Positions 11,426 through 64,000 of a stretch of DNA of 64,000 bases are shown one piece after another. The position numbers were made by a program, and so were the translations under genes. Below the pieces are notes generated by a model, which saw nothing but the letters and a program-made list of their open reading frames with translations, searched no databases and was not told the origin of the DNA. The number at the start of each line of letters is the position of its first letter. Position 1 is the stretch's first letter. Origin of the DNA: Klebsormidium nitens (taxonomy: Eukaryota > Plantae > Klebsormidiophyceae); contig DF237189.1 in assembly GCA_000708835.1 (NCBI GenBank), positions 66,686 to 130,685 on the forward strand, given 5' to 3'.

Positions 11426-14400
11426 TCAATCAGCACTGGAAAAATCTGAAGGTTCTCTGGGGTCCATGTTTCTCAAATCGGTCATCCGCCGATCGAACTC
11501 GGCTGCGTGCTTGTCCCGCTCCTCTAGTTCGCCCCCCTCAAACTCCAACCACTTCTCCCGCAAGTCCTCCAGTACATTCGTGCTCTCCTCGTTCCGCTCT
11601 TCCGTTCCTCGTGGCACCGCCACTTCCGGCTTGTTCGGCCGGATCGTTGCGTCAACGAACTCGGTTAGCGGCGGCAGCTCCTTAACCATGGCCTGGAAAG
11701 CTGCGCTTGAGGCAAACGCCTCAAAGTTGTTCGCCATAGCGTTGAGGCAAAACTCTCGTAACCGTGCGACGCCGTACCTGAGTAATAATGGATATAACTG
11801 AGTGCCAGGAAGGCGGATTCCCGCAAGTACGCAGGCCATGACTTGAGGCACACAAGCAAAAAGCTCACAAGATTGGGCGGAAGTAAAAAGCAGGGGGCCA
11901 ACAGTTGAAACCACAGCCGTTGCGCATCCTTTTCTCCCAAACGGGTATCGATTTGGAGCGGACACGTAGGTTGGGGGCGTCCTTTGAGATATCGCGGCGA
12001 AGCTTCGCTCATCAAGTTGAGGACCTCGGGACTTTCTGCACTACCACTCGTAGCTTTACAGATCCTTCTGCTGCAATCGTGAGCCCCACATTGATTTGAT
12101 CAATCAAAGCTATCTCCTCAGTTTGCTCCATTGAATCTTTGCTTTCCAGTGCCAAGCTCGTCGTGTGAACGAAGAGAAGCACTGCGCATTGCACGAACGA
12201 GTCCGTCGAAGACCCAGCCGGCACCGAAAGCATTGGCCACTAGCTGTCGCTTCAAAGTCGGCGACAAAAGTTGACTGGTTCAATAGCCCGCCTTTGCCCC
12301 TTTTCGACAGTGCGTTGTCTGCGCTTCCTGGACATTTTAAAATCCCAAAGGGTGGTAGATATAGCAAGGTTCTCTACGTTGGAAGTGTGCCAGCACGATC
12401 GAGACAGATAGGGTTGCCCACTCACATGTCGGCGACCAAGAGCCAGTGGCACAGCTCGTCCACATTCGCCGCCTCTAACCCCGGCAGCAGCGCATCGGCC
12501 ACGGCACGCTTCAGCGGAAACAGCAGAAACTGCGACGCCGCGTCTAAAACTTCCACCACCAAACCCGGATCCACTGACGTCACCCTGTCTGTGTACATGT
12601 ACTCGAACACCGTCTCGAGCGCCTCGGGGCTGACGTCATTCAGTGTCAAGACGGGCAACGTTGACCCGTCCGGGTCAGGGACTAACCCCTCCTTAAACCC
12701 CTCGGTGCGGCTGAGCCGCGCACGAAAGTACTCAGAGCGCGCGGCGAGAACCACTTTGTGCGCCCGGAATTTGCGGGCCGCGCCCGTTGCCAGGATGACA
12801 TCGGCAAAGTCGTCGCGGGAAGATGATGGCGTGGCAGCGTCGGAGAAGTCGAGGTCGCCCACTCGGTCAGTGATGACGTCAGAAGTTGCTGCGAGCCCGC
12901 CAGTGCGACGGAGGATGTTGCCCAGGCAGGCGTTCAAGCGGGCGGGCTCGGAAAGGGAGGACGCCTGCACAGAAAGGCCGTGCAATTGTTGGTCGCAAAG
13001 GCTTGGCAAAACGTTATCCAGCCTGCCACGTGTCCATGTGATCTCTCTGGATGATGAGAGGTGCATCTTAGGATATCAGTACAACTGGTAAGTTCCAGAG
13101 CTCACGTGCTTTGACTCTGTAAAGTTTGTCTCGTAACAATCGAAGGACCCATGAGTAGACTAATCACAACCAAAAGATGGGTTTGCACAAGGAAAATGAC
13201 GCGCAGAAATGCAATGCAAGTACCAATCCGCGGTAGACCCATAAGCGGTCCATACCAGGCTGCCTGCCGGTGCATACCTGAAGCACGAATCGGCGCTGCA
13301 GGTTCTGGTGCAGGCGGTGCCACTTCATGTCGGAGTACTTTTGGTGGTTCTTCTCCGCCTCTAGTTTCTCCCGCAGCTCCGGCAGCCGGCACTGTCGACA
13401 GATCCGCGCGAGGTCCTCCATTTCGTCCACCGCCACGTCTAACCGGTCCGTGTAGAAGAACTGGAACAGCGACACCAGCGCCGAGTAACTTAACCGCGGG
13501 CTCGCTAATCTAACCTCGTCTCGCCCCCGCCACTTGCCCGCAAAAGCCGCCGAGAAATACGGGGAACGAGCGGCCAGGATCGCGCGGTGTGCGCCGACAG
13601 TGCGATCTGACCCGAGGAACGAGAACGTGATGTCGGGCGGCCAACAGGGATCCCCCTCGGGGGGGAAGCATTCCCGGAGGTCTAGTTGTAGAGGGTCCAG
13701 GGGAGGGGGGCGCTGCTCGTAGGCTTTCAGAATCTCGCGGATGCGCAGGTTGAGGGCAGCGTAGTGGCAGCGGTCGCCGTCAAATGTGTACCTGGGGGGA
13801 GGAGACTCTACGTTGATTATCTCGACCGCAAATATCACGATTAAAGAGCCTCCCTGAGACGGGTGGGTTTATTATTGGGGTTTTGAGTACGCATGAGTGC
13901 AGAGGTTGATTTTCGGGTGTAGTTTTCAGTTGGGTTTAGGTTCTCAACTTTGTTCGTCAAATCTCGTGCACCTTTTGTGGATATTTCAAAGCGTTGTCCT
14001 AGGAGGAAGTGGGGTATCTTAGTCGTCGATTGGACAGTTGCTGTCCAGGTCGAAAACAGTTGAAGAATTTCTGCAACCGACCAGCTGGCATGCGGATACG
14101 ACAGTCGTCTCAACGAAAACCTTTGCAGCGCCATCAAAGCAGGTATTGCAACAGTGTTGGCGCGACAGCCCGTGATTACCTGAAAATTAATGTCCTCGAT
14201 CAGACGAGATTTGGGCACACTTTACGATGCAAAACGCTTCGTCCGAAGTGAATGAAGAAGAAGAAGAATAAACAACTCAGAAGGGAAGAAAAGACCGGTG
14301 CGGCTCACTTGGGCCGAGTATATTGATCACAAACGGAACAGCCCTGGATTAGCGAGGAGAAACGAAGGGCAGCTCACTCGCTACAGACAGCCCCCGCCTC

Positions 14401-16450
14401 CAACAAGATCATTGTTATGTCTTCATGGCCGGCGAGGCAGGCGTAGTAGAGGGGGGTGCTGTCCCACTTGTCGCGGGCGTTGATATCCACCCCCTCCTCG
14501 TGGAGCAAGTACTTGAGGCGGTCAACGTCTCCTGCGCAATACAAGCGAAATGATTAACGAGTTTAATGTTTGCTTGACCAGGATTGCGAGGCTCGACCAG
14601 GTCTGGCGGCTCTTCAAGGCTACACCCATCTATGCTAGTGGAGCAGAGAATATTTGAAGCTTGAAGCAGACCCATTGGTTTGGCTCTCGGATGCAGACAT
14701 AGAAACCTCCTGGAGCATGAGAACGAAGACTTTATATGTTCACATAATAAAAGGGGGAGCCGGCAGCAACGCAACAAGAAATACAAATAGCCAAAAATCA
14801 TACACCGAAGAAGTGTTACAAGCATTAACTCTGGAAAAGGCTGGTGGTAAGGTAACGCCAAGATTGCAAATGCCCCCAAATCTCTTCGCCCAGACAAATC
14901 TTCAACTTGCTCGCTGTGCAAGAAGACAATGCTCTAAAGAGCCACCAGGTCGAACCTGAGTGCCTCTGAGTGCCTCCGACCCCTGACTTCCCTATCAGAG
15001 GGGACCCTAAGACGTACAAACTGCAGTATCAAGTGGTGGTGAAAATGCTTCGCCAATCTGTGATTCAGATTGTGGACTCAACTAGGCCCCGTGCAGTCAT
15101 ACAGAGGCTTAAATGCAGAACCACCAGGTTTTCGGGATCTTGCGGTTTACGGCGTGGAAGATTGTGAATGAGATAGTGAAGGCCGAAACAACTCAGCCAC
15201 CAGATAGCTGTTTGCAAGGACTTCTCAAACGTCCAATCAGTGCCATATTTGAAAAGTCTCTTGCAGCGAGGGTCGTAAAAGAAGTATCTTCGCTTCTCCC
15301 GTTTCATGGAATCTTGGAAAAGAAAGGTTTCCATTACATCTAGAGGTCAATTGACTGGAATTATATGCAACCGATTGGTGGTAGTTGGCCGGACAAAACA
15401 CCTGAGAAGCTCAACTTAATGAATCTGATGGCGCCAGGACCTGATTGACTTTCCAACGCACCGGGACTCTGTTTGCATGTCCGAGACACACACTTTCTTT
15501 CGGGAGCAGCTTGCGAGTCAAGCTTGTCAACCTTTATGAACAAGAAACTGCGATTCGCTGGCAGTAAATGTAAGTGCAGAACGACATGTATAAGTACTGA
15601 TGAGATACATATAATGTATGACTTTTTGATGCATCTAAACGATCCTGAAGCTACGGCATAGAAAACCCTCAGTTTCATTCTATACAANNNNNNNNNNNNN
15701 NNNNNNNNNNNNNNNNNNNNNNNNNNNNNNNNNNNNNNNNNNNNNNNNNNNNNNNNNNNNNNNNNNNNNNNNNNNNNNNNNNNNNNNNNNNNNNNNNNNN
15801 NNNNNNNNNNNNNNNNNNNNNNNNNNNNNNNNNNNNNNNNNNNNNNNNNNNNNNNNNNNNNNNNNNNNNNNNNNNNNNNNNNNNNNNNNNNNNNNNNNNN
15901 NNNNNNNNNNNNNNNNNNNNNNNNNNNNNNNNNNNNNNNNNNNNNNNNNNNNNNNNNNNNNNNNNNNNNNNNNNNNNNNNNNNNNNNNNNNNNNNNNNNN
16001 NNNNNNAAGCTACGGCATAGAAAACCCTCAGTTTCATTCTATACAAGTGATACATGAAAAGTCATCTCTTGACCAGCCAGGCTCCGGCTTGACTTCTTCT
16101 TCCAACAATATAAACTGCAAGAGAAGACACACCACCACTCCATCAAAGTCCACGTAGCGTCCGCTTTTCCATCTAGAACGATCTGCCGCCTCACCACTTC
16201 TTGCCGCAGAGTACACATCCCCCTGCGGAGTGCGCTTTCTTCTTGACCGACGATAACTATCGCCCAGCTCCCACTCATCAATCTCATCTTCGGCTTCGGT
16301 GTCCCTTGTTGCAGAATCTCCCACAGCATCCAGCAGGTTCTCCTCTTCGGGCCCATTCATATTGGCACCCTGGTGTGCATCAGCAGGCGCCTGATCTGCT
16401 GGTGGCACTACACTTTCTGCCGCACCATTGGAAGCCTGATTAGCGTCCAT
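11426..16450 (-). CDS. Ankyrin-repeat plus double BTB/POZ protein (ABTB1 / At2g04740-like CUL3 adaptor)
   Basis: Exon 1 (16450-16195, ending VYSAARSG) splices in phase to 14531 ([10 protein letters not shown]...[22 protein letters not shown]). BTB1 has [13 protein letters not shown] and BTB2 has [17 protein letters not shown]. The C-terminus [10 protein letters not shown]...FDRR ends at the stop at 11426. Confidence 0.93.
15688..16006. other. Assembly gap (N run) inside BTB-gene intron 1
   Basis: Run of N. The same 40 bp sits on both sides. Confidence 0.99.
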
Positions 16451-17586: not shown

Positions 17587-19786
17587 ATGGGGAATTACTA
17601 CCAATACGACTGTCAGCAGTGTGATCGAGAGTTCTCCTCACAGGGTGCGCTGCAGCAGCACTATCGAGACTCACCGGTGCATAGGCTTATCGAGTGCGAA
17701 GAGTGTGACACGCGCTGCATTGGTGTCGCGAGCCTTGATGAGCACATGGCTGAATGCCATCCTCCCCCTTACTGCTCCCCTTGTGACAGGACCTTTGTCT
17801 CAGAGAAAGCGCTGCTACAACACCTATCGCAGTCCCCAGTCCATAAAGTCTACGCCTGTGACGAGTGTGGGATATATTGCATAGGTGCAGCAGCCTTGGA
17901 CAAGCATGAGGAGTTATATCACCCTCCCCCTTGCTGTGCAGAGTGCGACAGGACCTTTGTCTCTGACACAGCGTTGCAGCAGCATCTTAGAGAATCTCCC
18001 GTTCACAAAATCCTCACTTGTGACTTGTGTGGCAGAGACTACGTAGGCACAGCGGCCTTGGACCTGCACATGGAAGTGTATCACCCCCCTCCTCAGTGCG
18101 CAGAGTGCGACAGGACCTTTGCTTCCGACGCAGCGTTGCAGCAACACCGAAGGGAATCTGCCGTTCACAAAGTGCTGGTTTGTGACCTGTGTAGTACAGT
18201 TTGCGTCGGCACAGCGGCCTTAGACCGGCACACGGAAGCATATCACCCCCCTCCCCACTGCGCGCTTTGCGATCGAGTCTTTGTCTCGGAAAAATCATTG
18301 CAGCAACACCTCCAAACCTCTCCCGCACACCGAGTCCCGACCCATAGCTGTCGGGAGTGCGATAGATCGTTCTGCACGGAGGCGGCTCTTCGGCAGCACC
18401 TCAACTCGCCCATCCACGTTCATCGTTGCGAAGATTGTGACCGAACCTTGGCCTCTGCGGCTGCTCTACGGCAACACCTTCTCTCCCCAAGACATGTCTC
18501 CCTGGACCAGTCGTCTACGTCAGGGCCAGATTCCGAGGTGCGTCCGGCGATGGTGCCAGGCACTCCAGTCTCGCAAACCCCGGCACTTGCCCAACATGTA
18601 AGACACCCCATTTCCTTACGCTGCTTTCAGATCGATCTTTTGTTTGGATGAGATTGTACTGACTAGCTTGGTCTCTTTCTGTTGACTGATTGGAATTTCG
18701 CATGTCACTAGCGGCTGCACATCAAAAACATGACTCTCAGCACTGTACTCCATTCCTCACAAGTCTTGTATGTCAAACTGGATAGGACCCAGCCTGCGTA
18801 TGTTTTCAAATTCAGCCTGCCTGGAGTCGTCATGGAGGATTCCATCACTAAAGCGTTTGGACGGTCAATAGCAGATACACTGCTGAATCTTCTGGCCAAA
18901 CATCCAGAGCAGCTGCAGGCGTGTGCGCTTTCATCAGGTTGCACCAGTTCACAGGGCTTCTTCCACCTCAAGTTGCAGTTCTTGCTGAAAATGGATAATC
19001 CCTTTCGAACAGTGCGTGGCACTTAATTGTCCGCTTCTTTCGATCGAGTCGCTGCAGAGCATTGAGGTTTCACTGGAACATCTGCAGTTGGGGGTGGCAG
19101 AAGCATCTACTGCCTCTGCCCCAAACGGAGGCGACAGTGGAAGTGACCGCGTCGGTAACAACGGCCGACCATCTCCTCTTCCTGGCGCCGCTCACGGAAC
19201 GGGGCCTTCACATGTGCCTGGGAGCTCCGACACCTGGGAAGACGTTCCCCTGTCTCTTCTACGGCTTGAGTCAAGGGAACAGGAGCTCAACACGCAAGCC
19301 TCGAAAATCCGGTTTGGAAACTTTCCGGCAGAGGTCGCAAGGAACTCGACTTCGGACCACCTGCTCTCCGCCATCCTGCCGACGCTCTTGCCGAGGGCGG
19401 GGGGTGTGCCAAATGGAAGTAGCACAGGGGCCGAGGGAGCCTCAAGCTCTGGCACCAACTTTTTGTCGGTTGACGCGGCCGCTGCCACACTTGGGCCCCG
19501 CACGGTGAACGGATACGCATCTCAAACGCCTGCCGGTGGGGTGGACGGCCGGAACACGGGTCTCAAGGGAAAGACTAAAGTAGCCCCGGTTGATGAAGGC
19601 TTGGAAGGTACCGACCTATTCGAGGGATCCAGTTGCTGCATTTGCTTCGAGAAGCCCAAAGATGCCGCTTTCGTGCCATGCGGGCATCGAGTGTGCTATG
19701 GCTGCGGCGGAGTGGTACACAAGCAGCGGGGGGCTTGCCCGATGTGCAACAAAAAGATCGACATCGTGCTTCGACTTTTTGGCTAG
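17587..19786 (+). CDS. Multi-C2H2 zinc-finger protein (11 fingers) with C-terminal C3HC4 RING; exons 17587-18597 and 19088-19786
   Basis: Eleven CxxC-x12-H-x4/5/6-H motifs in a 54-aa (162-nt) two-finger repeat. The phase-0 donor CAT|gtaaga matches the phase-0 acceptor ctgcag|TTG. RING: C-x2-C-x11-C-x-H-x2-C-x2-C-x10-C-x2-C. Confidence 0.8.
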
Positions 19787-44200: not shown

Positions 44201-47200
44201 CTGCGTCAGGCACACTGGCTTCGCTTGAGCGCACAGAACTGAGAATTGGAAACCGCTAACGGACTGGCAAGAATGATTCGGTTCGGGCCAGTCCACTGTG
44301 GAAGGCTGTGCTAGAAACAGGCGAAGTTGCGATGATGGAAGGTTGGTGTAGACTGGCTTCGCTAGCACGTAAAAACAAATTTTCAAGACCGCGAACGTAA
44401 TGGCAGAAACGGTTTTGTTCGAGCCACTCTACTGTAGAAGGCTTTGCGAGGATTTGCAATGTTGCGATGATGGAAGGTTGGCGCAGCGGTCGGTCGGGAG
44501 CTTTCCGCCTCGGGCCTCGGGGTGCAAACACGGAGAGACCTCACGACCCAACAAGGGGATACTACGCGCCAAAACTCGCTGCGTCATAAGACACCAGCTG
44601 CCTTTTTTTGCAACAAGACCTGAAGGGTCTTTCTTTTGCTACTTCTGCGGTAAAACCAGCCCAGAACACAGGCAGAGCCCCGAGGACTGAACTCAATCTG
44701 CAGGGACGCTTTCTTCGTGCGTCTGAGAGCGTCTCGTACATCGTGCGACTCTCAGGGGCTTCCAGAAGGCTCATCTCTGGGCAGCCAGAAAGCCAAACGG
44801 CAAGCATCTTATTGCTGCTGACTGAAATGAAAGCAACAGCCGAGCACTTCCCGAAACTAACTTCACGGTGGCAGAGCAGTCGCCAACAGACAGTCTATCA
44901 CGGGCCAAACCACAAAGCTGCCTGATAGCAATTTTGGGCAGACATTCGCAAGAGCACTACTGTAGACCAAAAAGAACCAGCCCACCAACCAACGAAGTTG
45001 GCCAAAATAGCCACCTGGAGCAAATCGGTCGCCGAAATCAGGCCGTTCGATTACTCGAACGCGGCCATCGGACGACCCAGACTGTGGAACCGGCCCAGGT
45101 TGGACGCGGGACCCGGCAACCACTTTCGCGCAAACTTGCAGTATGACGCCGTCTTACAAAAGCTGTTCAGTCTCACCTTCCCGCTGTTGAAGAGCGTTCG
45201 GTGGATCCGTACGCGTGTCCTGTGGTCGAGGGGGCGGCCGCCGCCCCATCTGGGTCTTGTGCTGGTCCAACACCTTGAAGCAGCCCGCACTGCACAAGAG
45301 AGATGGGAGTAGTCATTCTCTTCGGCTCCCTAATAAGACAAAATATTTCGTATTGATGCTGAAATATACTTCGCAATAGCTTCATTATATATACTTCGAT
45401 TGGATGCTGAACTATACCTTGAATGGATACTGTAAACTTTATCTCGAATGGATGCTGAAATTTACTTCCGAATGGATGCTGAAATATACCTCGACTGGAC
45501 GCTCAGTTGGCTCGATCGGGACGTGGGCAGAGAAGGTTCTGACCTGGGACAGTAAAGCCAAACACGCAATTCTCGAGCTTCAGAATTGGAGCGTGCAGAT
45601 AGGAGCTGCAACATCTGATCCTCCACATGAAGGGGCCCAAAAGTCCGGATTTCCCAGATTAAGGGGGCCGAAAGTGTGATTCTTCCAAAAAAGGACGCCC
45701 AAAAGTATAATTGTTCCAAATAAGGGGCCCCGAAAGTCTGATTCTTCCAGATAAAGGGGCCTGAAAGTCTGATCCCCCACGTGAAGGGGCCCAAAAGTCT
45801 CCGCGCTCACCGCCGGATGTCCCAGAAGCGGATGGCGCCGTCGCACCCCCCCGTCATGAGCACGAACTCGCTGGAGAGCGACCACGTGACCGCCCAGACC
45901 GCGTCCCGGTGGCCCGCCAGGCTGTGTGCGAAGCCGCCGCTGCTGACGTCACACAGGCGGACCCGGGTGTCACCGCTGCCAACTGCACATAATGACGGCT
46001 TTCATCCCCTGCTTATTCGCCTTTTCTGTGCCAATCGCTTCCTTTCATGCAATGCTTTCAGGACCGCATTCCTGGTATTCCCACAAGGGTCTGGAGCCCT
46101 GACCTCGTCGATAAGGCACTTGGTTGAGCATCCCAATCGCTTGTCGTAGCAGGCTTCGTCGCATCATTTTAGATACTTTGATGATTGTAATGAAACAATG
46201 CACGACGCAATCGCGTAGGACCCCGACGATTTGACGGAAAGGAAAAAGAAAGTTTGCGCTGGTATTACACTCTATGTGGCGCCGAGTATGAGAAACGCTG
46301 GGACCTTTTGATATGAGGATGGTGTTGCAAAACGGCCCAAAAACGCAAAACGCATGTCTGAACAGTTGGCAGCCAAAGCGAGGCGTTCTATGACGGGGCG
46401 TGAGTGATGCTAGTGAGCACTGAAAACCACGGGCTCTGGCAGAATACCGCAAACTTCAGACGGCCGACAAAGACGAAACGAGGAGAAGAGGACAGCTAAG
46501 TCTTGAACCCTTTCATGGAAGCGAGCCTGCTTGAAAAGGCAACTGGTGCACCTAACCATCTCTTCGCTTTTGCCCATCGCTCCAAATGACTCTCAAAACC
46601 AGATTGTAAGCTGAACAGATTCACACTACTCCTTGACCGATATCAGGCTGGAAATTTGTCATGAAGGCAGAACAGACTCAAGAAGTCAAACCTGTCGGGC
46701 TTTTTCCTTATTCACACGGTCCAGCAAAGAAAAGCAGATGGCTTGCTTCTTTGTCACAATCGCGAGAAGGTCCCGAACAATTCGCTAGTCGTTTTTTCGC
46801 AACAGTTCACGGCAGCCCAAGAGCAGACTCTATGAAGTAAAGTTCTGCCTCTGGCGTGATAGCTCACCAGCTATGAGAGTGTGGGTGACAGCGACTGGAG
46901 ACATGGCGACGGCAAATACCTTGGCGGGAAGACTGAACGTCATCTCCACCTGGAAAACCATCCTAGCTTAGTATTGGGTTGCGCCAAGAAGATCAAAAGT
47001 ATAAGACCGCAGGAAAAAGAAGTGGAGGTAGTTGCTAGAATGACCTTCATGACACCAGGTGAGGGGGTATCAGCAAGAGAAATTGTACGGGTAGGATCCA
47101 TCAGACATTCTTCCAGGATATGTTGCAGCTCAGATCGCTGCTCCGTTTGCGTGACCATTTGAAGATACACCAAGCCACAAGGGCCCAATCATAAAACAAC

Positions 47201-54386: not shown

Positions 54387-54867
54387 CAGAGTGCTATGGC
54401 AAACAGAGTGGCGTGGAATGCTTGAAGAAAGGAATTGGATTGTTACATTAGCATCATCGAGAAAACCCAGCTCCCAATCTACATTGGGCAAGACTTCAGC
54501 GGGTCAGAAAAGGATTGCTCGTCTGAATGCAATTGCTCAGCAGCTACACAGTGCTAGTGCTGCTAACAAACTTTTGGGCGGAGAGCAATTCACTGTCCTG
54601 CACAGAAACTATTGAACAACGAAATCATCGATGACATTGATGAATGCAGGCTCCAGCATTGAATGCGGAGGGTGAAAGGCTTTCGAGTCGAGGCTTGATG
54701 TCAGACTGGAATCATGAATTAAACATGAACACCAGTTTTACGGCGGAGCTAATAGTAACGGTTGACCATCTCCATAGCTCTAGTCGACGATAGCCTCCCA
54801 AGCTCGTAAATCTTTGCCCTGCCAACTAACCATCTGATGAACGGCATAAAATGGAGCAACCACAAAG

Positions 54868-54952
54868 CGCCACGTGTCCCCCCCTTGCGGCAAGACCCGC
54901 GCGCCAAGGTCGCCCCCGAGAGCCTGACTCGATCTTAAGGTGATCGAGTCAG
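54868..54952. promoter_or_regulatory. G-box/ABRE-like GCCACGTGTC plus a perfect 11-bp hairpin in the divergent intergenic region
   Basis: CACGTG at 54871-54876. CTGACTCGATC-ttaaggt-GATCGAGTCAG at 54924-54952. Function is not shown by the sequence. Confidence 0.35.
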
Positions 54953-55962
54953 TCTCATCAGATGGTTTATCGCTAACATAGAGCAGTTGATTTGGCGTCC
55001 GAAATGAAGCATTGACGTCCGAGCGCGAGCAGCGCGCGCATCCTTCACTAAGTCACGGTCACTCCGACGTCATACAAGGGCCAACTGGCACAGCTGGCAA
55101 TGAGTCAGAGGCATTGACGCACCTTGGCCGTCCGATCGTGTCACTTGGAAAACATTTGGACACGTCACCGTCGTTAAACCTTCAGGAACTTGCAGAATAC
55201 AAAAAAAGGCGTCGCGGCCGCGCGCGAGAATCGATTCAATTTTAAAATCGCGCGACACCGGCCGATGCCGGCGCCTTTATTGCTAGCCCCACTGCGGGTG
55301 ATGACAAAAGACAGCTTCGGGGTGACCGCGCCAAGCATTTAGCACCGAATGCTGGTGCAGCCCGAATGGCTGGAACCCTCTTTTCGACGAGCTTTTCAAC
55401 CGGTTGGCTGTCCTTAGTTTTTAGGTACCTACAGTAGGTATTGTTTGGGAGCCAGCAGGTTCGATTCGAATATTCCACGCTGCTGCTGACTGTATATCCG
55501 GCTGGATGTGCTGGGATTTCAACAGCTAGCAGACTTTCTCATGCCTTGTCGAAGACTCGGGGTATACCGGCCATACCATGCAAAATGCTGAATTAAACTT
55601 TGTAGTATACGGCGCTGCTGACGTCCGAGTCCCAGGCCTGGAGCATTTGGACACCTCGGACAGCTAACTCGGTAGTGCCCCCGGTTGGCGTCTACATCCC
55701 TGTTCCTTAGGGAGAAGCCTTTCGACCGGCCAGCCTAATCGCCCCCCTTTTGGGCCAGGGGGGGGTTCTGAGACCGTCTGACATGGCGCTCTCGCAGTGG
55801 CCCAAACTTCATGCCACACACCCCTTAGCCCACCGACCTTCACTTGGTTTGTGTGTGTATTTTGTCGGTGTGAATGTCAGTCTCTCTCTTTGGAGGGTCG
55901 CAGTCTTCTGCTGTTACCTCACAGGCGGACAATCCCTGGAACTTGGTCACGAGCAGGAAGTC

Positions 55963-58688
55963 ATGGCTGCAAGCAGAGTCTCTAAGGCTTTGCTTGACCG
56001 GCAGCTCAGCTCCTTGATCTTGTCAGGCAGCTCAGCCATTCGGTATGGTTCCCTTCAGAAGTCCAGCTCGGTTTTCAGAAGCCTGCCAGCCGCTCGCAGA
56101 TTGCCAGCCGTGCAATGTAAGCGTTCGTCCTTTGAAGATCAAGTACAGACGTTCATTACGGACAGCAACAATTTCCAAAAGAGTGTGGAGGAATCATTTG
56201 CGCAAGTTAAGGGTGATTTGCAGAATGTTGCAGAGCTGCAGGGCCTGATGGTTGAGAAGCAGACCCGCAATGCTGTGGAGAGCGAAGAGGGGAGGGGCTT
56301 TGCAGTCCCGTTGTCTTTGAAATCTGTCGACGATTATGCAGAATATTTCAGCCAAGTGAATCAGGACGGCGATGGACAGTCCCTGCGAAAGACAAAGGAG
56401 GATGCAAGGAGGAATTTAACAGATTCCCTTCTGGAGCAGGTCAGTTCACATGCACACACCGTTTCCAGCTTGCTTGCTTGGCTCAAGCACTTTGCCGGAC
56501 TTGCCGATGTATCTAATCATTCAATATCAAAGCTTCGTCACACTTTTTATAGATTGCTGACTGAGATAGTGACCTTCTTCTGCAGTTGGTTCACATACTT
56601 CACCTCAATTGCAGAAGCTATTCTTAGGAGAATCGTGTCCCTAGCTGTAGGACTATGTGAAGCTCTGGGTTGAGGTATTGCTGTGGTTGTTCAGGATTAG
56701 CTGGTGGCATTCTGAAGTTGCCTGCCTTTGGAGCTTATCTTGTCCTTCTGTGATCTCTTGGCAGCACAAGGGTATTTACGCCTTCCTCAACTGCTTCATC
56801 AGCCGACTGGAGGCTCAGTTTGAGGGTGAAACTATTCTGATACGCTCTGCAACGGTGCGGAGGCTGGCGGCTGACCTTGTGACTGCTGGGAACGACCTTG
56901 AATCATCAGTCCAGCTGCGCCAGGTATGTCAGTAACGAAATCTCTTGTGGCCTGCTGCATAGGCAACTTGTAAAAGGCTCGTAAGGTCCTTCTTTAGATG
57001 GGGCTCCTTCTTAACCAACAGCATGGAAAGCTTAAAAAGATGTGGACAAGATGATTACGAGAGGGCTCGCCCAAAAGCCTGGAATTGTGAAGGCCTCATA
57101 CTTCATTCATTCTGAAAGGGGCCTTGGCAGGCCGGCCTTCTTCAGGTTCTCCTTCTTTAGTGCATGTGATAATTCCCATTCAAATACTTCCCTCTGACAG
57201 TAGGCACAGGCTTGCTGCTTAAGAGGGGTCGCTCATGCAGCACTAGAGCTCTCCAGAGATGCCACCTGAATGTGGAAAGGAGTGGTTGAAATGAACCATT
57301 CCATGATTGGACAGGCGCTTCAAGATCTGCGCCGCTTTGTCATGACGCCGCGAAGCAAGTTGGTGGATCAAGAAGAGGTTGCGGAAGCTGACAAAGAGGG
57401 AAAGAGAGTGAAGAAAGACGATTGTGCAGCGCAAGAGCCCGCGACATGGTAGGTCTGCAATCTCTCTTTATCTTATGCGGCTGCGGAAGTAAGGGGTTGC
57501 CAATGCATCCTGACATACTCGAAATCATGAGTCAATGCCGATACACTGTTCTGTTGTCGGAATGTGTCATGTTCTTCTAGAAAAGTTCAAAGTCACACAG
57601 CTTCTTGTAAGCCAACTTGACAAAGAGGCAGGTCAGCATGTTGCCCTCGCACAGCGCTTTGCTGTTAAGGATTCTTGAAGAGAAGAATTATGTCAAGGAT
57701 CTGCCCGGGCATGTCTTCTTGGACATACCAATGAAGATGTGTGCAAGTTCAACTGGAGAATTGCCTGATGTCGATTTCAGCAAGCGCGCTTCAACCATTG
57801 ATCGATCTGGACAAGCTCGTTAACTCTCTTTTTATATCAATCACTTCAGGAGAGCTAACTTGGTGAAGAAACGGCATCAAACATATAGAGCTTCTTGGAT
57901 CTGACAAACTTGGATCTGACAAACAGATGTGTGGATCTGACACAGTGTAGTGTGTTGCATTACTCGAAGAGCACTGAAAGGGTTGTCACTGGCTCATGAT
58001 CAGATAGGAAAGGAGCACCAAATGCTTTCTGGTGAAAAGCGTTCCAGTCGTTTTTTGCAGGTTCCTTCCTTTCTTCCAGCTTGCAGACGAGTACCTCAAA
58101 TGCGCTGTGACGTCAGCTGAGATGAACACACGCTTGCCGCTGGAGGACCATCTTCGCGGACCTCAGAGCTGCGCGACCGCCATGCTGGCAGCAACAGCAA
58201 GTTCTGAGCTGAGGGAGCTGCTCCAGATTGACGGAGGAGGGCGTGTGCGATCCACCGGGACAGCAACGATGATTGAACAAGTCGAAGTGAAAAGTAGGCC
58301 ATCGAGTAAGTTGAAGCAATGCTGTTTTTGGAAGGGGCAGGCTTGTTTGAGACACTGCACCTTGTTAAGGTTGGTTCTTGAGTTCCACATCTGCAGCTTC
58401 ATAGTCTGAAGCCATATCGATTGTGTTTCATGCAGTGTTGTGAGTCCATGTGTGTGCTTAGAGAGTTTTTATTGCCTATATGCAGGTATTAGCAAAGCGC
58501 GAAAGCAATTGGAGGTAAATCTGAGGGTAACGGAATTGGCGTTCAAGAGGGCGTTCCCAGCTAAGAAGCAGGGGCAGATAGAACTAGTCGGCTATATCTA
58601 TGTCGTAGGTACAGAAGCTGCACAGAGGTTCATGGGTTCCCAGATTCTGAAAGGTGGTAACCTAACCACCTGTGTCCGTATACGGTAG
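55963..58688 (+). CDS. Hypothetical protein: transit-peptide-like N-terminus, coiled coil, C-terminal PD-(D/E)XK restriction-endonuclease-like domain; about 6 exons
   Basis: Exons 55963-56439, 56765-56923, 57315-57448, ~57655-57740, 58080-58306 and 58486-58688 (exon 4 donor uncertain). The C-terminus reads LQIDGGG...IEQVEVKS...KARKQLE...ELVGYIYV. Confidence 0.6.
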
Positions 58689-59480
58689 CTTTTGTCGAAA
58701 CCCATGCAAAATGTCCCGAGCTGCCAGCAGCCTCCTTTGAGCGGTCTTAGAACAAGTTCAACATTTATGACGTTCCTGTCCAGCTGTTTTATGCAATTGT
58801 CCTGCTGCAGGCGCCTGATATTCTCTTGCTCCGTTGTTGAGCAACCTGTCTCAGCTGCATTGTTGCTCTGCCTTCACTCTAGAGATGCGTCAGGTCACTA
58901 ATTCTGGTATTAGGTTGAGTTGAATCTTGGTGTACATAGCATTACGCAGCTGCTGACTCAGTAATCCTGGCATCCGACATTAGAGGTTGCCGAGTGGCAC
59001 ACCAAGTACTGGTTCCGTTCAATACATCTTGATCTATTGCATTAAGCAACCAGTCCACCGCATTTTGACCTCCTTGCACTACCCGGCCAGGCTTGCACTA
59101 CGCCGTAGCTAGCCTAGTGCGGCCATAGGCTATTATGGCAATCAAATGTTCGTTAGTGTCCGATCATATATCGACATCATCCTACACTACATAATTCACA
59201 ACGTCCTAAAAGTTCACAAAGGCCTCTTATACTCTTTTAAGGATGGAACCGAGTTCAACTATCCTATGCGCCTGATTGAGCTTGAACGTCAGTAGTATAG
59301 GCTTCAATGACGAATCACTTCCCCCAATAGAAGAGTTCCCTGAAGGAAAGTCAGAGGGCACGTGTGGCTTGGTACGCTCGTTTTGATGCATGTCTTGCAC
59401 CAATAAAACCTCGGTCAGGCTAGCTGGCCCCATACATTTTTGCTTAGGGGATCTAATCATCTGGCCTTGTCTCGCCGCCG

Positions 59481-59812
59481 GTGTCCAAGTGTCCAAGGTC
59501 TAGCACCAACTTTTCGTGGTCGCTCATTGCTGACGTCATCACAGTACGAGCATGTCCAAGTGTCCAAGGTCTTGTACCAACTTTTCGTGTCGCTCATTGC
59601 TGACGTCATCACAGTGCGAGCATGTCCAAGTGTCCAATGTCTTGTACCAACTTTTCGTGTCGCTCATTGCTGACGTCATCCATCAATCCAATCAAAGCTT
59701 TTGGCCAACATTGTTGACAACATCATCACACGGAAATCCTTGAATGCAATCGTGGTTGTTGAATCATGAAAAAACATGTACCATCAATACACATTGACGA
59801 ATTTCAACAAGT
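59481..59812 (+). repeat. Left inverted-repeat arm: 3 x ~70-bp units plus ~130-bp unique extension
   Basis: The unit TGTCCAAGTGTCCAAGGTC..ACCAACTTTTCGTG.CGCTCATTGCTGACGTCATC starts at 59482, 59553 and 59623. Confidence 0.92.
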
Positions 59813-59881
59813 GCAGATCATAGTTCCAAAAAGCATGCACACAAATCTTCCCAATGTGACTAGAAAAACGTGACGGACTTT

Positions 59882-61401
59882 ATGGTAAGCTTCCTATGTT
59901 GATTCAAAGAAACCCGAGCAACTTGCTTCTTTGACTAGCTAACACGCAACGAGAGCTGGCGGACCGTTCATGGAAGATGCTTTCCGTCTCTTCACAAGAA
60001 TCCGAGCATTGCCAGTTGCACGCTGGCTTTGCCGTTGAATCCTCTGAAAGCTTCCGAGTCATGTGTTTCCATCTTGGCTGAGATGCCATTTCTCCTCCGC
60101 TCAGAAAGGCAAGGAGTTGACTCGATCACTTCTTGCAGGGGATGGAGTACCCCACTTTGCGCATGGACGCCTTTATAGGCGACATCTTCAACTACGACGC
60201 TAAGCTGGTCGACTACGTACGGAAGCTGTTCGGCTACGCCCTCAATAGCCATACGCGGGAGGAGGTGTTCGTGCTCTTGCTCGGAAAGGGTGGTAAAGTC
60301 ATTATCTTTTTGGTCTCGGATCCAAGACTTAGTGGAATCGTGCAAGTAAAAATCCAGGGAGTTCTTGATTCCTCCAATCTTACATTGAAGTACGTGCTTC
60401 TCCTGCATATTGGCCTATCAATTAACATGGTNNNNNNNNNNNNNNNNNNNNNNNNNNNNNNNNNNNNNNNNNNNNNNNNNNNNNNNNNNNNNNNNNNNNN
60501 NNNNNNNNNNNNNNNNNNNNNNNNNNNNNNNNNNNNNNNNNNNNNNNNNNNNNNNNNNNNNNNNNNNNNNNNNNNNNNNNNNNNNNNNNNNNNNNNNNNN
60601 NNNNNNNNNNNNNNNNNNNNNNNNNNNNNNNNNNNNNNNNNNNNNNNNNNNNNNNNNNNNNNNNNNNNNNNNNNNNNNNNNNNNNNNNNNNNNNNNNNNN
60701 NNNNNNNNNNNNNNNNNNNNNNNNNNNNGATGGGCAAGCGGCTTGCAATCACCGACGAGACGGCCGAGGGGGATCAGGTGGACCTCGGTCTCGTCTTGGC
60801 GGCAACGGGGGGCAGCTCAGTAAAAGCGCGGTGCCTCTATATCAACAGCGTCGAGTTTGTTGTCACGCACACACCGTTCGTGCAAACAAACTACCCTCCT
60901 GCGATCTCCGCAACAGCGATTCCGGACAACGTCGAGCGCCGACTGCGAGCGATCCCGTTCCCCAATACCTACGTCAGAGCAAACGCTTTTGACCCCACGA
61001 ACGCAACACACCGCCTCAGAGACGACCACTTGAAGGAACGCATGAAGGAAGAGGAGTCGCGTCGGCAAATCCTTACTTGGTTAGCGCGCGGCTCGGTGGA
61101 GTGGTACGCCAGTGCAGAGGGTCTTGGTTCTCCCCCCAAGGCCGTGAAGGATGCAACGGACGAGTACTTGCGCGAGGCGGACAAACTCCAACTGTTCATC
61201 GACCAACACTGCGAGGTTGGAGAGGGATTGTCGACACTCCAGATTGAGTTTGCAGCCTGCTTTAGGCAGTATTCCTCCGAGAGAATCTCGAATGAGGAGT
61301 TGATGAGGAAAATGGCTACGAAGGGATTCAAGAGGGCCAAGAACAATGATTCGCCACGGCAGTTCTACTATCCAAGGATCAGGTGCTCGTACACTACTTG
61401 A
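59882..61401 (+). CDS. D5-like / P4-primase-type superfamily 3 helicase domain with C-terminal winged helix; no primase domain seen; probably spliced
   Basis: FIGDIF...LVDYVRKLFGYAL...REEVFVLLLGKGG (Walker A start). After the gap come GKRLAITDE (Walker B), TGG...ARCLY, QTNYPP (motif C), RRLRAIPF and EYLREAD. The ORF is open for 224 codons from 60730 to the stop. A candidate ATG|gtaagc micro-exon lies at 59882 and an acceptor at 60138. Confidence 0.88.
60432..60728. other. Assembly gap (N run) inside the helicase gene
   Basis: Run of N. Confidence 0.99.
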
Positions 61402-61537
61402 TACGATTTGTGAGTTCAAGAAAGATGGTAAAGCCAAAGTGGCTGGCGATGCAAGCCGGTCAGGACGAGCTTCGTACTCTCTTGTTACACTAGGACAGGC
61501 TCCATTTGTACATTCTCCGCAAAAAGTTGTAATTGGT

Positions 61538-61908
61538 ACTTGTTAAATTGATTCAATGCAAAATGACGATACTTGTATCATCGACGCTCAACAACCACGA
61601 TCCCATCATTCAACCATTGCCATGATGATGTTATCAACAAATGTGTCGATTGAAAGTGTCTGCTTGGCTTGATGGATAGTGTCTGCTTGGCTTGATGGAT
61701 GACGTCAGCGACTGACGACGATGAAAAGTTTGCGCCAGAGCTTGGACACTTGGACAGTTGTGAGCCAAGACAGGTCCGCGCTACAATGACGTGAGCGATG
61801 AGGAGCTTGAACACTTGGACAGTTGTGAGCCGGGACAGGCCCGCGCTCCGATGACGTCAGCGATGAGCGATCGCGAAAAGTTTGCGCCGGAGCTTGGACA
61901 CTTGGACA
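61538..61908 (-). repeat. Right inverted-repeat arm (3 units, one partly deleted, plus extension)
   Basis: GATGACGTCAGCG...GAAAAGTTTGCGCC.GAGCTTGGACACTTGGACA at ~61697, ~61786 (short) and ~61850. The inner part reverse-complements 59680-59812 (e.g. ATCGTGGTTGTTGA, ACATT.GTTGA.AACATCATCA). Confidence 0.9.
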
Positions 61909-62050
61909 ATTCTGCATTCAATCGGGCACCGGCACATGCAACAGAAATGATTGCTTACAAGCACACGCATTGATGCACGATCGATGAACGGCCGGTATCA
62001 ATGCATGTAGCCACGGTCGCAAGGTTATGTTCGCAGTGGCTCGAGCGTCT

Positions 62051-63587
62051 CTAGTTCGTATCTTGCGCTATGTATCGCTTGTACGCGTTGGAGTTCTTGA
62101 ACCTGCGCTCAAGGTTTTCCTCGATCCATCTCCTCCGGGACTCTTCTAGCTCTCGATGCGCGCGCTCTAGTTCCCTCTTATATCTTCCAAAGTCTTGTAG
62201 ATATCTGCGGTACTCATCGATGAGTGCGCATTCTTCCTTCATCCATTCCCTCCACGGCATGCCGCCAGACTTTTGGGCGATGAAGCCGGGTTTAAAGCGC
62301 CTGTCGTACAGAGGGCCGAAGAGCTCCGTAGAGTAGCGAGCCATCGTCTCGTCTCGGTTTAAGCCGCCAATCGTGGAGCTTGCAAAATGGTCGACGAATT
62401 GTTGAAGGGTCTTTGCTCTCGCCTCCTGGAGAAGAAAAGGAAATGATGATGCTGCGGCCGGAATGCCGAATACGGTGCCGTCTCGACTTGGCAACCAAAA
62501 ATATTGACAGATTATTGGATTTTGTTCTGCTGTGCACAATAGCTGATAGTGGATGTGCATACGTCGTTTCCGGTTGTTTAGAATCTTAAGCGATGTACAT
62601 CAATTACTAAAAATGTACACGAATATCTGTCCGAAATATTGAGCGATGTACATCAATCACAAAAAATGTACACGAATCTCTGTCCAATACGTCCAGATTG
62701 TTGAGTGGTGTACATCAATGCTGTTGTGCACAATGTTGCTCCATTCACTAAAAATGGATGTACATATATCGATTTCCAGTTGTTTAGAAATTTAAGCGAT
62801 GTACATCAATAATCAGAAATGTACACAAAATCTGTCTAGAATATTGAGCGATGTACATCAATCACTAAAAATGTACACGAATCTCTGTCCAATCCGTCCA
62901 ACATGTCAAGTGATGTATATCAATTACTAAAAATGTACACGAATCTCTGTCCAAAGAGGAACATTGTTGGTGCCTGTGCGAAATCAGCTGACTTGATGCT
63001 AGTATCACTCTCCGTGGCTAGGTATGGCTCGCGCTACATACCTCAACCTTGTCGGGGTGGAAGTGCAATGACCAAGTCTTGTGGTGTAATACGATCTCGC
63101 CGCGATCGAACATCTCCCAAGCTTTGCTCGGAAGAAGCTCGGCATCCGCGATGAGCCACGACAGGGGCGGTCGCACGTACGCTGGTGCCTTTGGCATGGG
63201 TGGAGCGAGGATTGCGTTGCGAGCCATGATGCAATACTTTGCCATATGCCGTGTTCTGAAGATAGCTCGTTCTCCATCAAGAGTGTGCCGATACTTCAAA
63301 ACCGCAGCGGTGTTGCTTTGGCGCTTCAGCAGACGAGAAGCTTCCGACTCCAAATCGCGATATTTCGAAGGCGCGCGCTCGCTGGGAAGCTTGTAAGGCT
63401 CGCATCCCATCCTCTCTTGGTGACCTTCCAAAGCTTGCTTCGACATAAAGCTCTTGCTGCAAATCTCGGATCCATCTTCACGGTGCCATTCGAGGCAAAT
63501 GAAGCGTCTTCCATCCCGCTTCCAAAGTTGTGATGAAGCCGTAATCATTGATGCTGCGACAACACCTGGTGGACTAGCGGCGGACAT
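62051..63587 (-). CDS. Hypothetical ~306-aa protein with a C2H2-like finger and an HPD (J-domain-like) motif; exons 63587-63042 and 62425-62051
   Basis: Phase-0 donor GAG|gtatgt and phase-0 acceptor cttttcttctccag|GAG. Motifs are C-x11-C..KSF.SKQALEGH and EIVLHHKTWSLHFHPDK. A TATTTAAA lies about 100 bp upstream. Confidence 0.6.
62570..62952. repeat. AT-rich ~53-bp tandem repeat inside the intron of the HPD gene
   Basis: GCGATGTACATCAAT.AC.AAAAATGTACACGAAT.TCTGTC variants at about 62590, 62643, 62796, 62847 and 62909, with a partial copy near 62706. Confidence 0.88.
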
Positions 63588-63766
63588 AATAACTAGCAGA
63601 ACGGGAATGATCGTAGAGAGGGTGCTCGACGAGTCCTAAACCGACTCAACAGCAATGACGTCCCTAAATCGAATGAAGAGGGCACTTTTAAATAGATGAA
63701 TGCGATTGTAAATCTAGATCAAGATCGATCTGTTTTTTTATTTCTAAAGCCGTCACGATTCACTTC

Positions 63767-63901
63767 GTGTCCAAGTGTCCAAGGTATGTGACCAACTTTC
63801 TGTGGTCGTCCATCGCTGACGTCATCCGAGCGCGGGCCTGTGTTGGCTTCACATTTCAGAGCCTGTGCTTGTCTTGGCTTTGCGGTGTCCAAAGTGTCCA
63901 C
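63767..63901 (+). repeat. Third copy of the TGTCCAAGTGTCCAAG / TGACGTCA repeat family
   Basis: GTGTCCAAGTGTCCAAGG...ACCAACTTTC...CATCGCTGACGTCATCCGAGCGCGGGCCTG is almost the reverse complement of 61835-61908. A second degenerate unit ends near 63900. Confidence 0.88.
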
Positions 63902-64000
63902 ATCGGAAAAAGCGGGTCTCGCCGCTCCTATTTAGGATAGGGTGCCGCTCTTAATAACGCTTACCCATCATGTGCCGGATGGCTGCCGGTTATGGTGCCG

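Follow-up and report, generated by a model that had tools for sequence, protein, structure and literature searches.

The D5-type primase-helicases of giant viruses, among them C962R/PrimPol of African swine fever virus (ASFV) and D5/E5 of poxviruses, carry a Prim-Pol domain, a D5_N domain and a superfamily 3 (SF3) helicase in that order. Endogenous copies of such genes occur in the genomes of algae and plants. In DNA transposons of the CACTA/En-Spm and Ac/Ds kinds, the terminal repeats are inverted, and motifs bound by proteins form arrays in subterminal position. Integrated giant-virus core genes are known from Klebsormidium genomes, and the K. flaccidum entry in the 2017 survey reporting them is without a D5 gene (PMC5294986). 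Among Polinton-like viruses and virophages, many have a gene for a primase-SF3 helicase (PMC4642659). The helicase of transpovirons is not an SF3 enzyme but belongs to superfamily 1, and the polymerase to which it is fused has been inactivated (PMC5499653). The origins of phage-inducible chromosomal islands (PICIs) consist of two iteron sets that flank an AT-rich region after pri-rep (PMC6092414); the alpha protein of P4 and ORF904 of pRN1 have a C-terminal winged-helix DNA-binding domain, and pRN1 cannot do without the stretch on the 3' side of its rep gene (PMC2777425, PMC4234260). Here we analyzed a D5-type helicase gene, in the following gene A, that lies between inverted arms at 59482-61908 of a 64,000-nucleotide stretch of Klebsormidium nitens DNA (contig DF237189.1, positions 66,686 to 130,685; referred to as the window), together with the gene family to which it belongs.

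Comparison with related loci establishes the segment 59482-63910 as a rearranged partial copy of a multi-copy locus. Our best explanation as a whole, which we hold with moderate confidence, is such a rearranged partial copy whose motif arrays are probably binding sites of a protein of the family. Seven copies of gene A were compared, amounting to ~200 kb in all with ~20 kb per locus. Each exon-like block of the window was searched on its own, and for P0166 and P0164 of K. nitens the annotated models were taken unchanged.

Structure of the window copy

The initial annotation, made on the window sequence, had described a discrete element bounded by imperfect inverted arms of ~330-370 bp with the helicase as its only gene. 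The arms themselves are real. Inverted similarity extends from 59482 to ~59812 and from 61908 back to ~61538, which gives arm lengths of ~330 and ~370 nt, and 235 of 308 aligned bases (76%) are identical between left and right arm, with 86 gap columns. Both start sharply at the motif TGTCCAAGTGTCCAAG and contain three tandem units each, and the similarity continues past these arrays. No recognizable gene besides the helicase is present between the arms, and Rfam gave no match within 57000-64000 of the window.

Terminal inverted repeats are therefore present in form, but the ancestry of the two arms differs. The left arm (59482..59871, plus strand) corresponds, in inverted orientation, to 390 bp from the 3' flank of another copy in the family; it is 94% identical to the minus strand of K. 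nitens locus L073 at 8850-8457, a stretch that reaches there from 81 nt past the stop codon to the third array unit. It consists of three 70-bp motif units (59482-59680) followed by an AT-richer inner flank (GC content 0.38 at 59700-59899). From 59872 to 63850, on the other hand, the window is collinear with K. nitens scaffold DF237754.1 (L069) at 82-89% DNA identity, and from 59872 on it is just 70-76% identical to L073. The inverted-repeat look of the window is, by these alignments, created by the 390-bp inverted piece of 3' flank from a different copy.

The left-arm fragment and the gene fragment meet with a microhomology of 2-3 nt. Because the joint shares so little, illegitimate recombination is favored over an assembler jump through a shared repeat. 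The inverted-repeat structure could in principle be an assembly artefact, a chimeric contig joined within the repeat family, since the junction is 560 bp away from an assembly gap and a multi-copy family with near-identical array units favors misassembly. However, the junction lies in contiguous sequence and offers no common repeat for such a jump, and the remainder of the copy is cleanly collinear with L069, which leaves the artefact very improbable.

At the right end, the inner 3' flank of gene A (61402..61697, plus strand) is AT-richer as well (GC 0.37-0.42), is 88% identical to L069 10881-10614 and includes a 23-bp tandem repeat at 61648-61700 detected by Tandem Repeats Finder. It is followed by the right arm array (61698..61908, minus strand), whose three motif units read towards the gene, with TGACGTCA in two of the three; this array aligns to a six-unit array at L069 10132-10615. 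The next segment (61909..62040) is common to the window, L069 and L073 in a three-way alignment, and L073 diverges only beyond it. On the left side, similarity stops exactly at the first motif base; on the right, homology to L069 and L073 runs 132 bp past the last unit and then, with L069, on through the neighboring gene XY to a third motif array. The reported absence of a target-site duplication is confirmed, as no direct repeat is common to the sequence next to 59482 and that next to 61908 (or 62040).

These borders bear directly on the possibility that 59482-61908 is a discrete non-autonomous inverted-repeat element, carrying the helicase only, that was moved or copied in trans by full-length relatives. 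The arms are inverted and their outer start at the motif is sharp, as such an element would have them, but they stem from two copies (94% to L073 versus 85% to L069, with 76% between them), and the inner end of the left arm joins the gene fragment with no more than the short microhomology. The sequenced helicase blocks keep an intact reading frame, but they form the 3' remnant of a longer gene. All family copies are flanked on both sides by inward-facing arrays, and homology between L073 and L069 is confined to a unit of ~5.7-6 kb that starts in the upstream array, ends shortly past the downstream array and has different flanks in the two loci; the borders of this unit are imprecise, however, equal motif arrays also occur inside the introns of full copies, and no second copy of the window-type structure was found among the loci compared. 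With the homology that continues past the right arm into XY in the order of L069, and with the missing target-site duplication, we regard a discrete helicase-only element as quite improbable.

All gene A sequence 5' of the last codons of block 3 is missing from the window copy, and the 390-bp piece stands in its place. If two copies lay in divergent orientation, one deletion between them would give precisely this structure, as would an illegitimate recombination of equivalent effect. A divergent primase-helicase pair, with a B-type piece (see below) facing an A copy, exists in L073. Across the family, homology borders between copies as well as switches in the order and orientation of modules are located at or beside arrays, and arrays that are protein-bound or simply repetitive would account for this placement. 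Movement or replication of the window copy would be hypothetical. The rearranged partial copy is ordinary in its mechanism, and the novelty lies in the gene family and its polar motif arrays.

Further upstream, 54818-55229 of the window showed ~67% DNA similarity to L069 19237-19682, a region upstream of the K. nitens gene A. This similarity may represent remnant synteny, in which case the window locus may once have held a full copy.

The helicase gene fragment and the assembly gap

Gene A of the window (59872..61401, plus strand) is a 5'-truncated primase-helicase copy that is collinear with L069 12507-10895 at 84-85%. It comprises the last few codons of block 3, an intron, block 4 with the start of the helicase ATPase domain, a second intron that bears the assembly gap, and the last block encoding the helicase core, the C-terminal domain and the stop. 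The uninterrupted run of 224 3' codons in the initial annotation corresponds to 223 open codons followed by a stop at 60730-61398, and this run represents the last block of a truncated gene. It matched the PHROG family phrog_1156 ('DNA primase', E 2e-26, profile positions 611-798 of 855), and 54 codons at 60133-60294 matched positions 524-568 of the same profile. Eight further PHROG families also matched the window helicase, and its sequence relatives numbered 13,928 at E ≤ 0.001. Pfam gave no hit to either window helicase piece alone and a sequence search of the PDB with the helicase piece returned nothing relevant; Prim-Pol, D5_N and DUF5906 were found by Pfam in the relatives.

An AlphaFold model of the 223-residue piece (predicted local distance difference test score, pLDDT, of 85, based on an alignment of 52 sequences) had ASFV PrimPol as its best match in a Foldseek search of the PDB (E 6e-8, TM score 0.72-0.73), followed by monkeypox virus (MPXV) E5 and the SaPI5 primase-helicase. 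In a viral fold library, the same model matched primase-helicases of phages, virophages and giant viruses. The assignment of the gene between the arms as a D5-type SF3 helicase holds on the basis of the PHROG profiles and this predicted fold, and sequence relationships place the piece, as a fragment, within the D5-type primase-helicase family. In its likeness to ASFV PrimPol (TM 0.72) and MPXV E5, the window piece resembles the D5 proteins of giant viruses, from which the window copy differs in being without the primase and D5_N parts.

The assembly gap (60432-60728) lies in an intron of gene A. Window positions 60406 and 60729 correspond to L069 11916 and 11567 (349 bp there versus 323 bp here), and relative to L073 7364 and 7704 the spacing is 340 bp there versus 321 bp in the window; since both gap flanks align to L069 and L073 at the expected spacing, they belong to one collinear gene copy. 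The DNA immediately left of the gap is intron by homology, so that the 422-codon frame running through the stretch of N is meaningless. As judged from K. nitens model P0166, in which the junction of blocks 4 and 5 is visible, the gap conceals the end of the intron and ~47 codons. These include the remainder of the Walker A loop, whose start closes block 4 and which is complete in the P0166 paralogue. The last block as sequenced in the window begins with hydrophobic residues that end in DE, a pattern of the Walker B type.

Tblastn with the 30 best relatives detected homology only at 60121-60306 and 60730-61395, corresponding to residues 477-540 and 583-777 of the 800-residue protein P0005, and no Prim-Pol or D5_N part anywhere in the 64-kb window. 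Gene A has been broken once, by loss of its 5' part, and its 54 + 223 sequenced codons are free of stops and frameshifts. By comparison with its relatives, the window helicase is the 3' remnant of a Prim-Pol/D5_N/helicase gene of ~1,000 codons, which agrees with the earlier suggestion of an internally deleted derivative of a larger element. At most, the window copy could express a helicase-only protein.

Full-length relatives of gene A

Three K. nitens scaffolds (L069, L073 and L074) exhibit 70-94% DNA identity to the window region. Full copies of gene A were identified in L069, L074, L075, L001, L002 and L068, and the copy in L073 lacks nothing but an upstream acidic exon. Prim-Pol, D5_N and helicase are distributed in every one of these copies over five collinear blocks with identical junctions, the introns splitting the algal gene at conserved positions. 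The upstream acidic exon is also present in L069, L074 and L075, with annotated models of 1,025-1,028 amino acids. These alignments establish gene A as a giant-virus-type primase-helicase with an acidic N-terminal exon, Prim-Pol, D5_N, SF3 helicase and a C-terminal domain.

The helicase piece of the window is 86%, 72% and 54% identical to three K. nitens gene models and 83% identical to the Trinity transcript P0167 from a relative. Between window and L069, the last helicase block has a ratio of nonsynonymous to synonymous substitution rates (dN/dS) of 0.16 at a dS of 0.27, with 204 of 223 residues identical. The family is, judged by these comparisons, multi-copy, under purifying selection and transcribed in a relative.

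The usual neighbors of gene A are the small gene XY and an intronless paralogue, B. This second, divergent primase-helicase lies beside gene A in several loci (L074 12996-15851, L069 1680-4594 and L002 14856-17564), and in K. nitens L074 it forms an intact, intronless open reading frame (ORF) of 951 amino acids. The gene order A-XY-B-W is kept between K. nitens and metagenome contigs. Orientation is less constant: that of B relative to A varies among loci, XY faces one way relative to A in the window and L069 and the opposite way in L002 and L068, and in L074 B is inverted and XY is absent.

As in the giant-virus D5 genes, the order of domains in the algal full copies is Prim-Pol, D5_N and SF3 helicase. 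The algal gene differs from them in having introns at conserved positions, in its multiple copies and in its motif arrays. The nearest intronless relatives of A (P0006 and P0008, ~40% identity) are encoded on the metagenomic, giant-virus-like contigs L070 and L071, together with EsV_1_7_cys, PCNA, Bro-N, kinase and OTU genes, and no motif arrays were found near the D5 genes of these two contigs. Such hallmark-rich surroundings were encountered only there; unlike an endogenous giant-virus insertion, the window and the related loci do not contain clustered hallmark genes, and no other giant-virus hallmark gene was detected in the scanned window ORFs or within ~20 kb of the seven copies. A protein scan of IMG/VR recovered only phage-like relatives at ~30% identity.

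Polinton-like viruses, virophages and transpovirons are likewise small eukaryotic DNA elements with terminal inverted repeats, and virophage primase-helicases are among the fold matches of the window helicase. No capsid, packaging ATPase, protease or integrase was, however, among the Pfam hits for the window and the seven related loci, although remote capsid homologues could escape Pfam. The initial annotation was accurate in reporting neither transposase, integrase, polB nor capsid, none of which is among the Pfam hits. The region differs from a Polinton-like virus or virophage in that Pfam found no capsid module in any of these loci. Recombinase domains were absent from the Pfam hits for ORFs of the window region, L069 and L074 and from the hits recorded for L001, L002, L068 and L075 (~20 kb per locus). 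In the literature, we found no description of this gene family with its motif arrays.

Motif arrays in and around gene A

The 16-mer TGTCCAAGTGTCCAAG (up to 2 mismatches) is present seven times in the 64-kb window, compared with 0.03 expected occurrences. Three copies are located on the plus strand at 59482-59638, three on the minus strand at 61741-61908, and one on the plus strand at 63768. Each starts a unit of 65-70 bp, most of which also contain TGACGTCA. Tandem Repeats Finder reported the left array as a 70-bp unit repeated 2.8 times and scored in the three-unit right array a 65-bp repeat present twice plus one further unit. GC content in the inner flanks beside the window arrays is 0.37-0.42 versus 0.5-0.6 around them.

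A motif census recovered 72 units in ~199 kb of Klebsormidium-type loci, with conservation recorded as shares per column. The composite unit consists of a double octamer, a short semi-conserved stretch and then, in most copies, TGACGTCA ~49 nt on. This second motif occupies +46 to +51 in 44 of the 72 units, with none in the 12 units of L001, and outside the selecting 16-mer there are a few conserved positions up to +32. The units occupy the spacers or introns between coding blocks as well as the flanks of gene A, in full copies too.

The arrays are polar with respect to the gene. All 23 downstream units are antisense to it, while 12 of 14 upstream and 19 of 27 internal units are sense, those in the 5' part of the gene for the most part. 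Every copy of gene A is bracketed by inward-facing arrays. The 16-mer is retained in L001 and L068, whose helicases are just 45-50% identical to that of the window; neutral DNA would not outlast such protein divergence. In L002 it is replaced by a different 9-mer that occurs in four repeats per unit and in the same layout.

Inverted arrays with a variant, TGGTCAAG-type double motif were observed in L001 (11577-11807 and 12604-13229), upstream of the second primase-helicase copy on that contig. From their sequences, the paralogues appear to differ in the motif variant that they carry. An origin of the arrays from miniature inverted-repeat transposable elements or 'introners' was considered and rejected, the arrays being one-directional tandem repeats without inverted ends or duplications of their own. 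A motif scan of IMG/VR returned only 52 single chance hits.

Possible function of the arrays

The same motif scan applied to metagenomes led to five contigs (L063-L067) of one soil bacterial element. In this integrative element, an AT-rich spacer lies amid direct and inverted sets of TGTCCARG octamers, at least 11 in number, and this octamer field directly follows the stop of a D5_N+DUF5906 helicase gene and is close to a tyrosine integrase; an SNF2-like gene is also present (e.g. L064 1365-3130). The bacterial helicase is only a remote relative of the algal one (~21% identity), and the octamer beside its gene is the same as in the algal arrays.

The arrays of the algal family are probably binding sites of a family protein that resemble the iterons of a replication origin. 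This interpretation is preferred because of the octamer layout in the bacterial element, the parallels to PICI, P4 and pRN1 and the AT-richer inner flanks of the arrays. The algal loci share the layout of an iteron origin, a short motif in direct and inverted sets beside the gene with AT-rich DNA adjoining. Like P4 alpha with its ori/crr, the pri-rep-ori region of PICIs and ORF904 of pRN1, the algal family combines a primase, an SF3 helicase and a putative C-terminal DNA-binding part with adjacent repeats and AT-richer DNA. In contrast to these systems, the algal host is eukaryotic, the gene is intron-bearing, and the arrays are built of composite units of 65-130 bp that extend over hundreds of bases, lie kilobases apart and are in some cases intronic. 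As iterons of an origin beside an initiator gene, the arrays would be recognized by the helicase through its C-terminal domain; an alternative reader of the motif would be the zinc-finger-like product of ORF X (see below).

Several observations weigh against origin-like binding sites. Iteron function is something we infer purely from such parallels, and the giant-virus-like relatives on L070 and L071 have no arrays. The bacterial match is effectively one independent hit where, by a rough estimate from the size of the collection, ~1 chance hit is expected; only its position beside a helicase gene is improbable. The change of the octamer in L002 tracks the divergence of X (37-40% identity) and not that of A. 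The second motif of the arrays, TGACGTCA, is also in surplus in other parts of the window and might belong simply to ordinary regulatory DNA: it occurs 15 times versus ~1 expected, nine of these sites being away from the helicase region and three of the nine clustered in 310 bp (12575-12881).

The arrays might accordingly be read as intronic and flanking enhancers or silencers, composed of a bZIP-type TGACGTCA site and a site for X, that serve domesticated, tandemly amplified genes of viral origin. The fixed placement of TGACGTCA at +46 to +51 in the majority of the units and its surplus across the window would agree with such elements, but the units of L001 keep the double octamer without any TGACGTCA, and enhancers would not be expected to show so strict an orientation with respect to the gene. 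The family genes are intron-bearing, transcribed and under purifying selection, and A-XY-B-W order is kept between K. nitens and the metagenome contigs, all of which would suit domesticated genes, for which high copy number and frequent rearrangement are, however, unusual. X carries a weak C2H2 signature, and in L002 its divergence goes along with that of the octamer; against this stands the same octamer as an origin-like field beside the bacterial D5-type helicase gene. We consider a regulatory role of the arrays rather unlikely, and it would leave the structural account of the window copy unchanged.

A left arm that starts at the motif and arrays that face inward also resemble the ends of DNA transposons with subterminal binding sites. 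This likeness counts against our best explanation and leaves some probability to a defective element mobilized in trans. The likeness to CACTA/En-Spm and Ac/Ds elements includes inward-facing arrays of short motifs on either side of a coding region and the existence of internally deleted derivatives. The algal family differs from them in that neither a transposase belonging to any known class nor a duplicated target site nor exact termini in common were found, in that its arrays also occur inside the gene, and in that the arms in the window come from different copies.

Carried further, the origin-like interpretation could extend to an undescribed eukaryotic, virus-derived replicon module composed of an initiator, inward iterons, XY and B, which would multiply within the nuclear genome through replication machinery of its own, with no known transposase, integrase or capsid, and of which the window copy would be a defective derivative that retains the helicase and the arrays at both ends. 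We regard so extensive a module as unlikely.

The neighboring gene XY

Gene XY (62051..63587, minus strand) lies beside gene A in L069, L068 and L002 as it does in the window. It consists of the exon-like ORFs X (63018-63587, minus strand), with a weak C2H2-type zinc finger (E 0.006-0.0004), and Y (62051-62560, minus strand), to which Pfam gave no hit. The spacer between them (62561-63017, minus strand) is filled by a second kind of array with partly palindromic units of 53-62 bp, 53 bp in the window, that contain GATGTACATCAAT and AATGTACACGAAT, and the position of this array is conserved in K. nitens L069 (9225-9393) and in the metagenome relative L068 (13763-13818). As K. nitens model P0164 splices X to Y, the two ORFs probably form one gene. 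The dN/dS values between window and L069 are 0.27 for X and 0.46 for Y. Homologues of X are K. nitens-named or, in many cases, from one metagenome of the Joint Genome Institute; the X of L002 (37-40% identity) is the one whose divergence is accompanied by the octamer change.

A PDB sequence search with the XY model P0164 found nothing relevant, and the AlphaFold model of X was poor (pLDDT 72, predicted TM score 0.31), with no match below E 2 in a fold search. An HPDK motif at the C-terminal end of X prompted a search for a J domain in XY, which was rejected because neither Pfam nor the PDB sequence search gave a DnaJ hit.

Beyond XY follows the third motif array of the window (63768..63910, plus strand). 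Its one exact and one degenerate unit point away from XY, and its counterpart is a five-unit array at L069 8420-8005.

Other features of the window

Outside the region of gene A, the window contains a second assembly gap, an ORF with C2H2 zinc fingers and two more tandem arrays (15688-16006, 17916-18310 and 45348-45800). The zinc-finger ORF has internal repeats of 162 bp and is followed by a RING-finger ORF; no K. nitens homologue of it was found. The two arrays consist of 23- and 31-bp units.

Significance of the gene family

The window copy illustrates that an apparent single-gene 'element' bounded by inverted repeats can arise where two truncated copies of a repeat with polar arrays are joined. 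D5-type viral genes in algae are usually regarded as the decaying remnants of giant-virus insertions. The family described here has instead gained introns, is under purifying selection and is present in many copies, with strictly oriented arrays around and inside the gene. Among the virus-derived replication genes of eukaryotic genomes, this primase-helicase family represents a new variant by virtue of its polar motif arrays. It allows one to ask, for a specific streptophyte example, by what means a replication gene of viral origin is maintained and spreads together with its cis sites.

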